From Ostrea edulis (lineage: Eukaryota): a stretch of DNA of 64,000 bases. The notes under the pieces are model-generated. The model saw nothing but the letters and a program-made list of their open reading frames with translations. It was not told the origin of the DNA and did no database searches. The stretch is from positions 20,274,001 to 20,338,000 of the forward strand of contig NC_079164.1 of the NCBI RefSeq assembly GCF_947568905.1. Reading direction: 5' to 3'. A program made the translations under genes and the position numbers. Within the stretch, counting starts at the first letter, position 1; every line of letters begins with the position of its first letter. This document shows positions 1,178 through 7,100 of this stretch, piece by piece.

Positions 1178-4100
1178 TTTAATTCTGTCGTAGTTTCTGC
1201 GGACCAGGTCTCTGATGGCAGACGACACATAGTACAGCGTTCTTCTTTGACTATTCTCTGCCCTGTACATGACCTGATTCCTTGGAAAATCATCAGGAAT
1301 TCCATAAAAATTCCTACAATGCAAGAAAAATGGCCATTACTTAAAATATGCCTCCCATTTCTAAAGTGTGCAATTGAAAACTTTTATTTAATATCGTAAA
1401 CCAAATACTACTTCCTACAACTTTTATTTGGGGAATTGTTCTCCATAAATAAAAATAGATCAAATCAATGATTCAAGAACTGTTGTTAAACACAGAAAAT
1501 TCTTGCACATAAACTAAAACTGGTTTACAATACACTGCGGTATTTGGATATTTCCGATTGATTGGGATTGATTCTTACTTGATGGGGTCCCACATGGGAT
1601 CACTATCTTCAATAAAAATGTAGGGGTCTTCTTTATAACCATGCAATCGCCTGGATACCTGTTTAGATGGCTTTGGGCTGCAAAAGAAAATAATTTTTAA
1701 AAAAGCCAATTCATAATTGTAATTTCTACAAAGTAACATAACTTATAACTGTAAAACAGAATGTATTTATAAATCGTGCACATCATCAAATCAGAAAGTC
1801 GCATCAAACAGTTGATATCACTCACAGTGGAATCCTAACAACCAGATTTTATCACACACATGGTGAAAATCCTAACAACCAGATTTTATCACACATGGTG
1901 ACAATCCTAACAACCAGATTTTATCACACACATGATGACAATGTTAACAAGCAGATTTTTATCACACACATCGTGGAATTCTAATAACCAGGTGTAATTC
2001 AGACATCTATCTATAATGGGGTTCTAACATGAATTACTTCAAGTCTTCTTCCTCCTCTGCTGGTCGTTTCTTCGTCCCTCCGTCTTCTGTGCTGTGACTG
2101 GTGTCCTCTGGTTTGTTGTCCTTCGTCTCCCCTCCACTGACAGAATGATCCCCAGTGACTTGATTTTGTTCTTTCTGGTCTGTAGTAGACATAGACAGTA
2201 CTTGTCATTCCTTTCACATTCCAATTCATCTTGTTTTATAATTATTAACAAGATGAATTGGAATATCAATAATATAGAGGAAAGATAGGACCGTTTCTTC
2301 AGGAACAAGATGTGTTTGTGAAACACAAATGCCCCCGATAATGGCCAATTCCAAAGATGGCCAAGGTCACAAAGAAAAATATCTTGGTACCAGTAGAAAG
2401 ATCTTGTCACAAGAAATGCTCATGTACAATATGAAAGCTCTAATATTTACCATTTAAAAGTTATGACCAATGTCAATGTTTTTAAAAGTAGGTCAAAAGG
2501 TTTAGTACCAACGGAAAGGTCTTGTCACAAGGAATACACATGTGAAATATGAAAACTCTAGCAGTTACTGTTCAAAAGTTATTAGCAAGGTTAAAAAGTT
2601 TCAGACAGAATGACAGATTTACAGAATGACAGACAGGACAAATACAATATGACCCCGATCTTCAATCTCGGGGGCATAAAAATTAAATATAACAGGAATA
2701 CAAAATGACCTGTGTTTACTGGTGTTTTTTTCTGTTGCCATGGCAGTGTGGACTTTTTCTGTAGGACAGCAATAAAGAATCCCCCTGTATCCTGCTGATG
2801 GGGTAACACCCTCATACTGAAATAAACAGAGCTGGGAATGAGCACAGCAATGTAAACTATCTCTCGGATGCTTGTCATGTGATCTGTATTTTCATATATA
2901 TATACACCAGGAATATAGACAAATGTACACTGTTCTTGACACAAATGACATTTTGTCCATAAAGACAAAATTAGATTAGGTTATCAAGATTTTTCTTTAG
3001 CACTGGTAACTAATCCTATAACCATACAATGTTATAGGATCTACTTTGAGTGCCACATCTTTCTGACTTCTGGACATGCCGTCATATCATTCATATTAAT
3101 GTGACATTCATTTATTACAGTAGTATACACAGTTACCTCTTCATGAATGATGCTTAATACCAAACACAGTAAAACATGCTTCTAGCAAAGTGCTGGGGAC
3201 AAAATGGATTCATTATAAACAAAATTCATTTGTATCAAATGAGTTCATAATATGTTTTCAAAATACATGAAATGAAATTCACTTTCTTGAAAGCATGAAT
3301 AGATAATATAAAGTGTTTCTGCTGTAACCATGTTTTACTGTATCAAGTGGTCTTAGAACAAAGTTTCTAACAGAAAGGCAACATTCAGGATCAGAAAATT
3401 CAGAAATACTGATAATCTAGTACCCTAAAATATAATATACAGTACAACTCAATCAAATTCACTCTTATACCCGATACAAAATTGCTTAGGTATGTGGTTT
3501 AATATGAAAGTGACGGAAAGTGAAAAAAAAGCAGAAGTCAATCAGTGACCTCTACTTTGAAATGAAGGACGAGGGCATATTAAAACTATAATGTACAGTA
3601 TTGACATTAACACAATGGGCATGAGAGCTAGATCTTAAAGAATTTTTGATTAGGAAATAATATGAAATGTAACAGAAATGGATGTCGAACAAGAATTTCA
3701 CATCCTTTTTATGTGAAAATCAGTGCCCGCAAATTAGGAAAATATATTTCCTTTCGTCCTGAATATCAATGTTGGATAATGAAAGATAACCGAGCAGTCT
3801 CCACGATTTGAATATAGATATAAACAATTTATTTTCTAAGTTAACATTAAAATATACATTTACCAACAGTACACCCTTTCTTCCCTTCTAGCCCAGCGAT
3901 GTAATGACTGATTTACACCTACCTCTACTTTCCTTTATGTTTACGTCAAACTAACAACATCACCGGCCCCGCGCTTGATGTAGTGATACCGGTGACAGCT
4001 ATATATCGCGTTAATTACAATTCTTACAAAATACTCACTGATTACATGAAGTATGAAAACCATACATCACAGCAAGCAAAAAAAATTATTTCCATTAATA

Positions 4101-7100
4101 TACATGTATTTTTTACTACTTACATTGTTTGCTAATTGAAAGTGTCTGTAAAAGTTTCACCCTAAACTTCTAAGAGTTGAAGGTTTAACCTCACTGTTTT
4201 CTATAGCACCCTTTACAAATCCTAAAACCATGAAAATGTTAGAGGACCTACTTGAAGTGCCGATCTACAACAATCCTACATAAAATATGTAACAACACCA
4301 TACAGCTTTGAGATTCATGTAAAGAAAGACGAGACTAAGTTTTCCCTCAAACCTTCCATTTATGCCATTCATTACATGATTTTTCTGTAATTACAAAGTG
4401 GATTGAAATTGACTTTCAATCCAATGTTTTCACTGTCGTTCACGCTGAATTGTACCTGCCCTTTACAATTGTGACATCAAATATTTTGATTGCAGCAGAT
4501 AAGTAAAAATCAGTTCATTCATAATTGTTGGGAGTTTATGGTTTATTTGAAATAAATGGACAAGGCATACATTGATGTAGTCATAATTCTATTTCTTCTA
4601 TGTGTATTCTGTCACTGGCATCGAATGGATTTAAGAACAAAGCCAATGATGTCGCCATACTTGTTTTGGGATAACAGATAGACATGGAGACTTCTTACTC
4701 GGCACTAGGTGTATGAGAGTTCTAGCAAAGAATTACTGCTGAAATCACTCCGACACTCAGAATTGCCTAAAATTAAAATATGCTATTACAAGCAAGCAAT
4801 TTCATAACTTGGCAAGAGAAGTAACCACACTACCGATATTTTTGGTTAACTTTTACAGAAAAACATTCACCATAAAATTCCACGATTTGTACAGCCTGCC
4901 GAGAGGATCAAGCATCTCGTGCCAAATATCAAGTAGTTCTGATACAAAGTTTCTAATAGAAAGGCAAACAACACTTTCATGCAACTGAATCCCAAATTGC
5001 TGCAGTGGTCTAGAGGTAGAGCGATCACCCCGCATGCTGAAGATTGGGGTTGGAATCCTGGCTGCGACAGACCTAAGCTGTTAAAACAGGTAGTGACAGT
5101 TCCATCACCAAACGCTCGGCATCAGGTGTGAATGTCACGGGTCCTCAGAGATGACCTTAAAAACGGATGTCTTGTGTCACAGTAGGTGTGGCATGCTAAG
5201 GAACCCTCACTGCTCAATGGCTGTAAGCGCTGAGCATAGGCCGAAATTTGAAGCCCTTCACCGGTCGTGGTGACACCTACATACATACGAGTGAAAAATT
5301 CTCGAGAAAGACGCTTCACAAGATACAATCAATCAATCAAATTTCATGCAGCTATATCCCATAATTATAAAATAGAAGGATTTACATGTCGCAAAAATAA
5401 GCACCTGAAAATGAAACTCAAATCAAATCAAGTTTTTAAAAGATATGCAGTGTGATTGTAGGAAAAACATAGTTGTTGATTAGTGTATCTCTGCATTGTA
5501 TTAAAAGTACAATCTTAAGTTTAAATTCAACATGATGGGCATGAGCGCAGGATCTAAATGAAGTTCTAGTAAAGAGGTTTTACATGAAACATGTAAGTCA
5601 TACATCATGACAAACAAAAAATCATATCCCTTTGGCCTTTTATGTATTTTCCTGAAGGAATCATGCTTATCAAAGAGATGTTACATTGTAAAATTGTCTG
5701 TGAAAGTATTACCCAAAACTTATGAAAAGTTCAAGGACTAACTTCAACAGTTTTCTATAGCACCCTTTACAAATCCTAAAACCATGAAAATGTTAGAGGA
5801 CCTACTTGAAGTGCATATCTATGATAATCTGAAGTAAAATGTACGTACAGTGTACATTTTTATTACATGTGATGACACCAGACAGCTTTGAGGTTCATGC
5901 ACAGAAAGACTAGACTATGTTTTTCTCAAACTCTGCATATGCCTTTGCCAAGATTCAGATGCACACATGTACATTGTAAAAATTCAATAAGAGATTTCTG
6001 AAAGCATGCTAATTAGGAAAGGGGCAAAACTCAAGTAACTCAAACAAAAACATTTACCATCGATGCAGGTTTAACTTCTCATTCTCCTCTTTTGCAGGGG
6101 GGAACATGGAGGGCTGGAAATGAGTGTAGTTTGATACAGACTCAAAGCTGTCAAAGAACTGACTACCATCCTTCGTCATCATCTGTAAACAGCAGGGGAT
6201 TGTTTTTCAGTATCATGTTTTTCTTAACACAAATTGTGAAGAAGAAATTAACACCCCCCTCAAAATGCAACAAATATAAGAATTGAGTTTCCACCTCTGT
6301 CTTGAGTTACCTTCCAATGAGAAATTCCTGAAGTGTACTTGAGATTCTTTGTTTCCTTGCAAACATCAACCAGCTCCACTGTGCCTGATGATAAAAATTA
6401 ACAACATATCAAATCTGCTGAGTCACAATTTTTCATTTTTTTCTGGATTTAGATACAATATGCAAATAACAGCTGATATAAAACATAAAATATCATCATT
6501 ATAAAGATGATGAGATGTCCCTACATATAAAATTCCAAATTTCCTAATAAAACTTGCATATTATGAGGCCTAGTTGTATGCTGAACTTTCTTTTCCCCCC
6601 ATTAGTTCATTTCTGATCACTTCTGTTCAGTGCTCCCACTGGACCAGAATTCCCTTTCGCCACTTTTTCGGGGAGTGGCGCGGCACAAATAATCACATGC
6701 TTTACAATTATTTCCATCATATTATATATTATTTTATTCATTACACTTATTTTAGCATTTTTAATCAGTTACATTACTTAATCATATCCAGCTACCATAC
6801 CTAAACATTTCTTTCTGAAATAATAAGAAGTTGATTTGTTTGATAAATTCTATTATGGAAATCAAAATTCAGGTAATAAATCATATAAATATAAAGCTTC
6901 ATGATGCTACACCCCTCAGTGAAAACATTGTGTACATTGGCCGAAATGCAGATGTCACAAAACATCAAGCCCAATTTAGAGTCGTATCTCAACCATTCTC
7001 TATCAAATTTCCGTTTTTGTATGGAAGATTTTGCAATTTGGACAGAATCAGATGTTTGAGCAGGTGGGGTTGACTGTAAAGCCAAACATAGATATTTTTT

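Follow-up and report, generated by a model that had tools for sequence, protein, structure and literature searches.

The 64,000-nt stretch of Ostrea edulis DNA analyzed here (contig NC_079164.1, positions 20,274,001 to 20,338,000; the whole of it is called the window below) carries an NSUN2-type gene, for an RNA 5-methylcytosine (m5C) methyltransferase, on its minus strand, and one intron of this gene probably holds a few related genes for box H/ACA small nucleolar RNAs (snoRNAs) that would be transcribed within the NSUN2 pre-mRNA. The host was recognized by Pfam domains in minus-strand exon open reading frames (ORFs): Methyltr_RsmB-F at 8185-8355 and 7676-8068, and Pre-PUA_NSUN2 at 1160-1324. 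A preliminary description of the locus had named NSUN2 as the host and placed the intron at 2817-6057, and both assignments stand. The parts of the host gene that matter here are the following.

6058 to 6182, minus strand: upstream exon, ending ...NLHR; borders placed from AG/GT, with flanking ORFs
2817 to 6057, minus strand: host intron of 3,241 nt; the sequence shows its GT at 6057-6056 and its AG at 2818-2817
2720 to 2816, minus strand: downstream exon; 3' border placed from a GT and from the point where similarity to the orthologs stops, with flanking ORFs

Three candidate snoRNA units, c1, c2 and c3, lie in this intron on the NSUN2 sense strand, each running from GCAC to 3 nt past an ACA, at the positions that the preliminary description had given. 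They fall into two types, A and B.

5692 to 5814, minus strand: c3, predicted A-type H/ACA gene, 123 nt (fold, Rfam SNORA31, boxes, orthologs); 5' hairpin 5814-5760, H box AUAGAA 5758-5753, 3' hairpin 5750-5698, ACA 5697-5695, tail AUU 5694-5692
4140 to 4260, minus strand: c2, predicted second A-type copy, 121 nt (fold, Rfam SNORA31, boxes); 5' hairpin 4260-4206, H box AUAGAA 4204-4199, weaker 3' hairpin 4194-4148, ACA 4145-4143, tail CUU
2928 to 3053, minus strand: c1, predicted B-type paralog, 126 nt (fold, Rfam SNORA69, covariance model R1); 5' hairpin 3053-3000, H box AAAGAA 2998-2993, 3' hairpin 2989-2934, ACA 2933-2931, tail GUG

The layout of hairpin, ANANNA hinge, hairpin and ACA plus 3 nt, described earlier for the three segments, was recovered in all of them. 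The H box follows the first hairpin after 1 nt (AAAGAA in c1, AUAGAA in both c2 and c3, AUAUUA in the A-type orthologs described below), and the ACA comes immediately 3' of the second hairpin in c1, c2, c3 and the same orthologs. The minus-strand minimum free energy folds have two hairpins, with z-scores of -4.1 for c1 (-38.9 kcal/mol), -1.4 for c2 and -2.7 for c3, while the plus strands of c2 and c3 fold no better than shuffles. No CAB box (UGAG) or AGAG was found in the terminal loops of the units, the sole UGAG of c2 being part of a stem; with terminal loops that lack a CAB box, an identity as Cajal-body H/ACA RNAs (scaRNAs) was set aside.

Relatives of the locus were collected by a word search with the ORF of the downstream exon, followed by retrieval of the contigs that encode it. 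This yielded a second bivalve lineage (contigs L001, L004-L007, L086 and L087), whose NSUN2 exons are 80-86% identical to those of the window and whose introns are much shorter. With 98-100% similarity among them, L005, L006, L007, L086 and L087 amount to about one lineage; the more diverged L001 is a contig that begins just past the A-type position. An ORF of another species, P0001, also extends into the intron. When the orthologous intron was aligned with the window intron by blastn, only the A-type and B-type segments aligned. Positions 229-361 of L006 align over their full length to 5815-5689 (a match to c3/c2), and positions 486-527 align to 3022-2981 in c1 with 83% identity. The A and B units of the second lineage lie ~100-125 nt apart, and their order (A-type, B-type, exon) is the order c3/c2, c1, exon of the window. 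Folding of the A-type orthologs gives -47 kcal/mol, with z-scores from -6.3 to -6.6, and they carry ACA plus 3 nt after their second hairpin. The comparison of orthologous introns that the preliminary description had proposed thus came out in favor of the segments, which alone align and do so with covariation, the ortholog of c1 being decayed. In the distant NSUN2 loci L002, L003, L008, L084 and L085, where an NSUN2 exon is present, no related element was found; the orthologous intron of L085 (~690 nt) contains only a palindromic repeat.

Covariation was seen in two kinds of alignment. RNAalifold, run on c2, c3 and the orthologs, identified 7 pairs that persist although both partners have changed. 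In a model-based alignment that included c1, 86% of the cells were paired (shuffles: 74±1.7%; slid controls: 32-45%), and 18 pairs had changed on both sides, compared with 8.8±1.8 in shuffles (0/500 reached the observed values).

Within the window, c2 and c3 lie in two copies of a ~1.55-kb tandem duplication, and c1 lies outside it.

3341 to 4343, unstranded: first duplication copy, which carries c2 (repeat families D1, D2, D4, D5 and D6; segment identity)
4927 to 5923, unstranded: second duplication copy, which carries c3; interrupted by a very high-copy repeat at ~4985-5335
4196 to 4260, identical to 5750-5814, unstranded: 65-nt identical island, exactly the 5' hairpin, H box and 3 nt of c2/c3

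The flanks of the duplication are 72-79% identical by segment, and the 3' hairpin (4140-4195) is 79% identical. An identical run of 65 nt has a chance of ~1e-7 at 78% identity, so that 65/65 identity amid such flanks points to purifying selection or gene conversion acting on the guide-bearing module only. The 3' hairpins of c2 and c3 differ at 12 positions. They include one double compensatory change (U-A to C-G), one that preserves a wobble pair, four located in the pocket and two that disrupt pairing; from this pattern, the 3' hairpin of O. edulis seems to be a structural module for the ACA and not a guide. The first hairpin of c1 is common with that of c2 and c3, as had been proposed. This is evident by alignment and from covariance model R1, built from c2, c3 and the orthologs with c1 withheld, which finds c1 over its full length (40.8 bits, E ~1e-6) and gave no match in the window besides c2, c3 and c1. 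As judged by these comparisons, c2 and c3 arose from one candidate gene by tandem duplication, and c1 is an older paralog.

Copy number and variants were read from contigs that came from four DNA runs, each of a different study, and were placed on the intron. In all four runs c1, c2 and c3 are at the single-copy baseline depth, with doubled depth solely over the stretch common to c2 and c3, while the repeat stretches of the same intron are from 10^2-fold (3168-3284) to more than 10^4-fold (5040-5273) deeper than the baseline. The units are thus not pieces of a high-copy transposon, an outcome that the preliminary description had named as fatal to its proposal. A scan of metagenomes with the conserved 5' hairpin gave 0 matches. 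Among the differences listed, single-nucleotide polymorphisms (SNPs) fall within the units at 2942 and 2985 (c1), 4163 and 4179 (c2) and 5721 (c3); none of those listed falls in the 5' hairpins and H boxes, 195 nt in all, which is suggestive only. The c2 variants at 4163 and 4179 co-occur within the same contigs, in two runs, and both switch c2 to the c3 base, which could be due to gene conversion between the copies or to an old haplotype. The upstream NSUN2 exon has two single-base differences, at 6063 and 6096, in one DNA run.

Two repeats of this intron can be described. The very high-copy repeat at ~4985-5335 reaches ~10^4 to 3x10^4 times the baseline depth, with many internal deletion variants; since it is present in the second duplication unit only, it was inserted after the duplication. 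Its start looks tRNA-like by eye, which ARAGORN did not confirm, finding no tRNA in the intron. The other repeat resembles a miniature inverted-repeat transposable element (MITE) and spans 3166-3341, with 22-nt inverted-repeat arms (3166-3187 and 3320-3341) that are 86% complementary, and reaches 10^2 to 5x10^2 times the baseline depth; some contigs skip 3203-3322.

The comparison with Rfam, suggested in the preliminary description, bore the proposal out at a relaxed threshold, where full-length H/ACA alignments fall on the minus (sense) strand only; the gathering scores were reached by no family in the window or in the orthologs. At the relaxed threshold, c1 matches SNORA69 over its full length with a score of 33 bits and an E-value of 0.0039 in 3.7 kb, its best Rfam match, yet below the gathering score of 47 bits. 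SNORA31 matches c3 and c2 over their full length at 23.9 and 21.4 bits, respectively (gathering 40), and the best family of the A-type orthologs is SNORA2, at 28.2 bits (gathering 70). Across the 64-kb window, c1 alone gave an H/ACA-type match with E<=2, so such matches are not background here. Different members match different families, which indicates a generic H/ACA grammar and not membership in a named family. Because every gathering threshold was missed, the units form a putative new snoRNA family, or two related ones. SNORA69 (RF00265) guides human 5.8S U69 and 18S U36 (PMC11001866). Neither pocket of c1 fits 5.8S U69 or 18S U36/37, and c1 was ruled out as a SNORA69 ortholog.

For the guide pockets, rRNA sequences were taken from a prokaryote genome collection that had been scanned for a conserved 18S motif. 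Of the 75 contigs found (L009-L083), 3 were used (L036, L045 and L052), chosen since their records point to invertebrate hosts and identified by Rfam as invertebrate ribosomal DNA (rDNA). L045 is a complete 18S-5.8S-28S unit by Rfam and served as the reference for target scans and for the numbering of U132; L052 is a metagenome-assembled genome (MAG) of a mussel symbiont and L036 one of a lucinid-clam symbiont. The 75 contigs, filed as bacterial or archaeal and carrying a eukaryotic 18S motif, are probably host or laboratory contamination; some of those outside the 3 used come from human-associated isolates and may be human rDNA. Each pocket was fixed by its conserved upper stem, with its top 14 nt before the H box, and the L045 rRNAs were scanned exhaustively. 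The guide strands are as follows.

5802 to 5810, minus strand: predicted guide strand of the c3 5' pocket (UUCAAGUAG), complementary to 18S CUACUUGGA immediately 3' of the target UC
5768 to 5772, minus strand: predicted 3'-side guide strand of the c3 5' pocket (UUGUA), complementary to 18S UACAA immediately 5' of the target U
4256 to 4248 and 4218 to 4214, minus strand: predicted guide strands of c2, as in c3, from the target scans

The 5' pocket of c2/c3 forms 5+9 contiguous pairs at 18S U132, in the context 5'-UACAA[UC]CUACUUGGA, with 13/14 of the pairs Watson-Crick. The second-best rRNA site of this pocket has 9 pairs. At U132 the A-type orthologs form 6+7 and 6+9 pairs, and shuffled guide strands reached the observed pairing in 4/1000, 0/1000 and 4/1000 trials. 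The predicted target U lies 14 nt from the H box, within the H/ACA spacing of 14-16 nt, and its context is identical in L045 and L052. Moreover, both guide strands are nearly invariant between the lineages and the intervening stems co-vary. Hence c2 and c3 appear to guide one 18S pseudouridine, at U132. The earlier suggestion that the NSUN2 locus supplies pseudouridine guides accordingly fares well for c2 and c3, with their predicted match to 18S, and does not extend to c1, for which no rRNA target was predicted. The predicted 18S site is not known to be pseudouridylated in humans or yeast.

Among the 3' pockets, those of c1, c2 and c3 have no rRNA site with >=12 contiguous pairs. The 3' pocket of the second-lineage A-type unit forms 5+8 bp at 18S U37, a U-rich and weak pairing that 15/1000 shuffles reached before correction for four placements. 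By sequence context, this U37 is the human 18S U36 site of SNORA69 (PMC11001866), and the pairing is lost in c2 and c3. A match of c3 itself to U37 was discarded, since it requires a pocket without the upper stem.

Taken together, single-copy depth, synteny, covariation, boxes and folds favor the intronic H/ACA cluster put forward in the preliminary description, known here from DNA alone, and we have good confidence that the three units are real snoRNA genes. Several observations weigh against this interpretation, besides the missed Rfam thresholds. The covariation comes from only ~3 deep lineages, in an alignment that was fitted to the structure, and the identical 65-nt island of c2 and c3 could also be explained by gene conversion. 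The SNPs listed show no overall depletion in the units (at least 5 in 370 nt, those listed all in 3' hairpins). The 18S sequences are those of other invertebrates (L045 and L052) and not of O. edulis, and the lucinid-clam sequence (L036) differs by one base. The 3' hairpin of c2 is weak (z -1.4) and has a tiny internal loop. The 5' pocket of c1 is a degraded version of the c2/c3 guide and has no good target, since its 9 pairs are reached by 157/500 shuffles. Finally, the B-type orthologs of c1 do not fold (z +0.4 to +1.0), and those of L005-7 have lost the ACA and the GUGC (now GUGA), both of which L001 keeps. The last of these points, together with the two pairs of the lower and upper stems that are broken in c2 relative to c3 and the SNPs segregating in the 3' hairpin of each unit, also fit a reading in which only part of the cluster functions, the A-type gene being real and c1, possibly also c2, being decaying paralogs (snoRNA pseudogenes) that still fold. 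This is possible, but we hold it to be doubtful. The unit without an rRNA target in either pocket, c1, is also the one with 11-bp and 9-bp perfect upper stems, an H box and ACA plus 3 nt, the best fold and the best Rfam score, and such intactness is hard to explain by long neutral decay because the rest of the intron is unalignable between the lineages. Orphan H/ACA snoRNAs are, moreover, common. As for c2, its weakly folding 3' hairpin stands beside a 5' hairpin and H box identical to those of c3 at 65/65 positions, amid flanks that have diverged by 21-28%.

Other readings accept or dispute the units in different ways. Introns with two snoRNAs that are trimmed by exonucleases only give rise to snoRNA-ended long noncoding RNAs (sno-lncRNAs), of which SLERT is an H/ACA-ended case (PMC11028025, PMC4233238). 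Three H/ACA units 1.1-1.4 kb apart in one intron provide the genomic precondition for sno-lncRNAs of ~1.55-2.9 kb, capped 5' by c3 and 3' by c2 or c1, made instead of or besides free snoRNAs. A selected lncRNA body is made less likely by the spacers between the units, which are full of repeats and lack conservation in the second lineage, where A and B are separated by the short distance given above. We consider such products unlikely, and the fuller proposition, that the H/ACA units would act as exonuclease blocks and the NSUN2 intron would yield SLERT-like, H/ACA-capped sno-lncRNAs of ~1.55-2.9 kb in a mollusc, slightly less likely still. The segments might also be conserved structures of the intron that influence NSUN2 splicing or expression in cis, and not stable trans-acting RNAs, an idea that draws on their sense orientation, their confinement to a single intron, their conserved synteny and the end of c1 ~110 nt from the 3' splice site. 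A cis element would not be expected to show the full H/ACA grammar, with an ANANNA 1 nt after hairpin 1, an ACA directly after hairpin 2, a pocket 14 nt from the box and bipartite complementarity to 18S, and this makes the idea very improbable. Chance hairpins or fragments of repeats or transposons could be imagined in an intron that is AT-rich and holds the high-copy element at ~4985-5335 and the MITE-like element at 3166-3341. Such an origin is so improbable as to be nearly negligible, given units at single-copy depth, found at the same position in the second lineage with covariation and with covariance model E-values of 1e-6 to 1e-33.

Under the favored reading, of a snoRNA gene family within the NSUN2 intron, the ancestral intron would have held an A-type and then a B-type paralog just upstream of the downstream exon. 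In the oyster, the A-type gene would have been duplicated with ~1.55 kb of intron, so that c3 and c2 would be its two copies, and c1 would be the B-type gene. Dyskerin-type ribonucleoproteins (RNPs) would assemble co-transcriptionally on each unit, and the units would be stable as RNAs of ~121-126 nt. Exonuclease trimming of a debranched lariat alone would halt at the outermost RNPs, so three free snoRNAs would need cuts between the units or alternative splicing, failing which a snoRNA-ended lncRNA would be the expected product. Release after splicing may therefore proceed either through endonucleases that cut between the units and exonucleases that then trim the ends, or through alternative splicing. 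With their identical 5' hairpins, c2 and c3 would pair with 18S on both sides of one uridine, U132, which a dyskerin-type RNP would convert to pseudouridine at 14 nt from the H box. The 3' hairpins of O. edulis, which diverge at a neutral rate and keep their stems, would serve mainly as the structural ACA module, and c1 would be a well-folded orphan.

The units resemble known box H/ACA snoRNAs in their length (121-129 nt), in the order of hairpin, ANANNA, hairpin and ACA with a predicted 3-nt tail, in an internal-loop pocket 14 nt from the box with bipartite rRNA complementarity and in their sense orientation within an intron of an RNA-metabolism gene. They differ in being known here as sequence only and in a predicted 18S site that is not known as a pseudouridine in humans or yeast. 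Several snoRNAs in one intron are unusual in vertebrates and yeast, and Huang et al. reportedly described intronic H/ACA clusters in Drosophila in 2005. Intronic multi-snoRNA clusters are also described for plants and Plasmodium (PMC2656528). The O. edulis cluster shares with those of plants, Plasmodium and Drosophila the tandem-duplicated paralogs within a single host intron, and differs in that its host is a protein-coding RNA-methyltransferase gene of a mollusc. With sno-lncRNAs and SLERT it shares the presence of at least two snoRNAs in one intron, but the spacer here is unconserved and repeat-rich.

The locus does not overturn current understanding and is a fairly ordinary kind of discovery; its value would come mainly from the predicted lineage-specific 18S pseudouridine and from the question of processing. 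A pseudouridine is predicted at a defined 18S position in bivalves, and three H/ACA units in one animal intron make a test case for free snoRNAs versus a sno-lncRNA. If the latter were true, tandem duplication would have created a new lncRNA species coupled to the expression of an m5C writer. In either event, an m5C methyltransferase gene would be linked, through co-expression, with predicted pseudouridine guides. The intron would also record the birth and death of snoRNAs in one place, with ancient paralogy, a lineage-specific tandem duplication and the decay of a paralog in the sister lineage. Hardly any mollusc snoRNAs are annotated, since the Rfam models fail to pick them up, and c1, c2 and c3 all score below gathering.

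Some minor observations were made outside the intron. Two further sub-threshold Rfam matches in the window, SCARNA7 at 43227-43374 (minus strand; 27.7 bits, E 0.012) and mir-3149 at 58664-58725 (plus strand; 36.9 bits, E 0.0022), fall far short of gathering and are probably hairpin or repeat artifacts. Among the distant NSUN2 loci, L002 and L003 are large contigs of distant eukaryotes, and L002 has a U5 small nuclear RNA gene near its NSUN2 exon (8554-8671, plus strand). Both contigs also carry a full U3 snoRNA gene within ~2 kb of the NSUN2 exon, scoring 131-139 bits (L003, 11330-11530, plus strand; L002, 12448-12661, minus strand), and in L003 this gene lies on the same strand as, and just after, the Pre-PUA exon.

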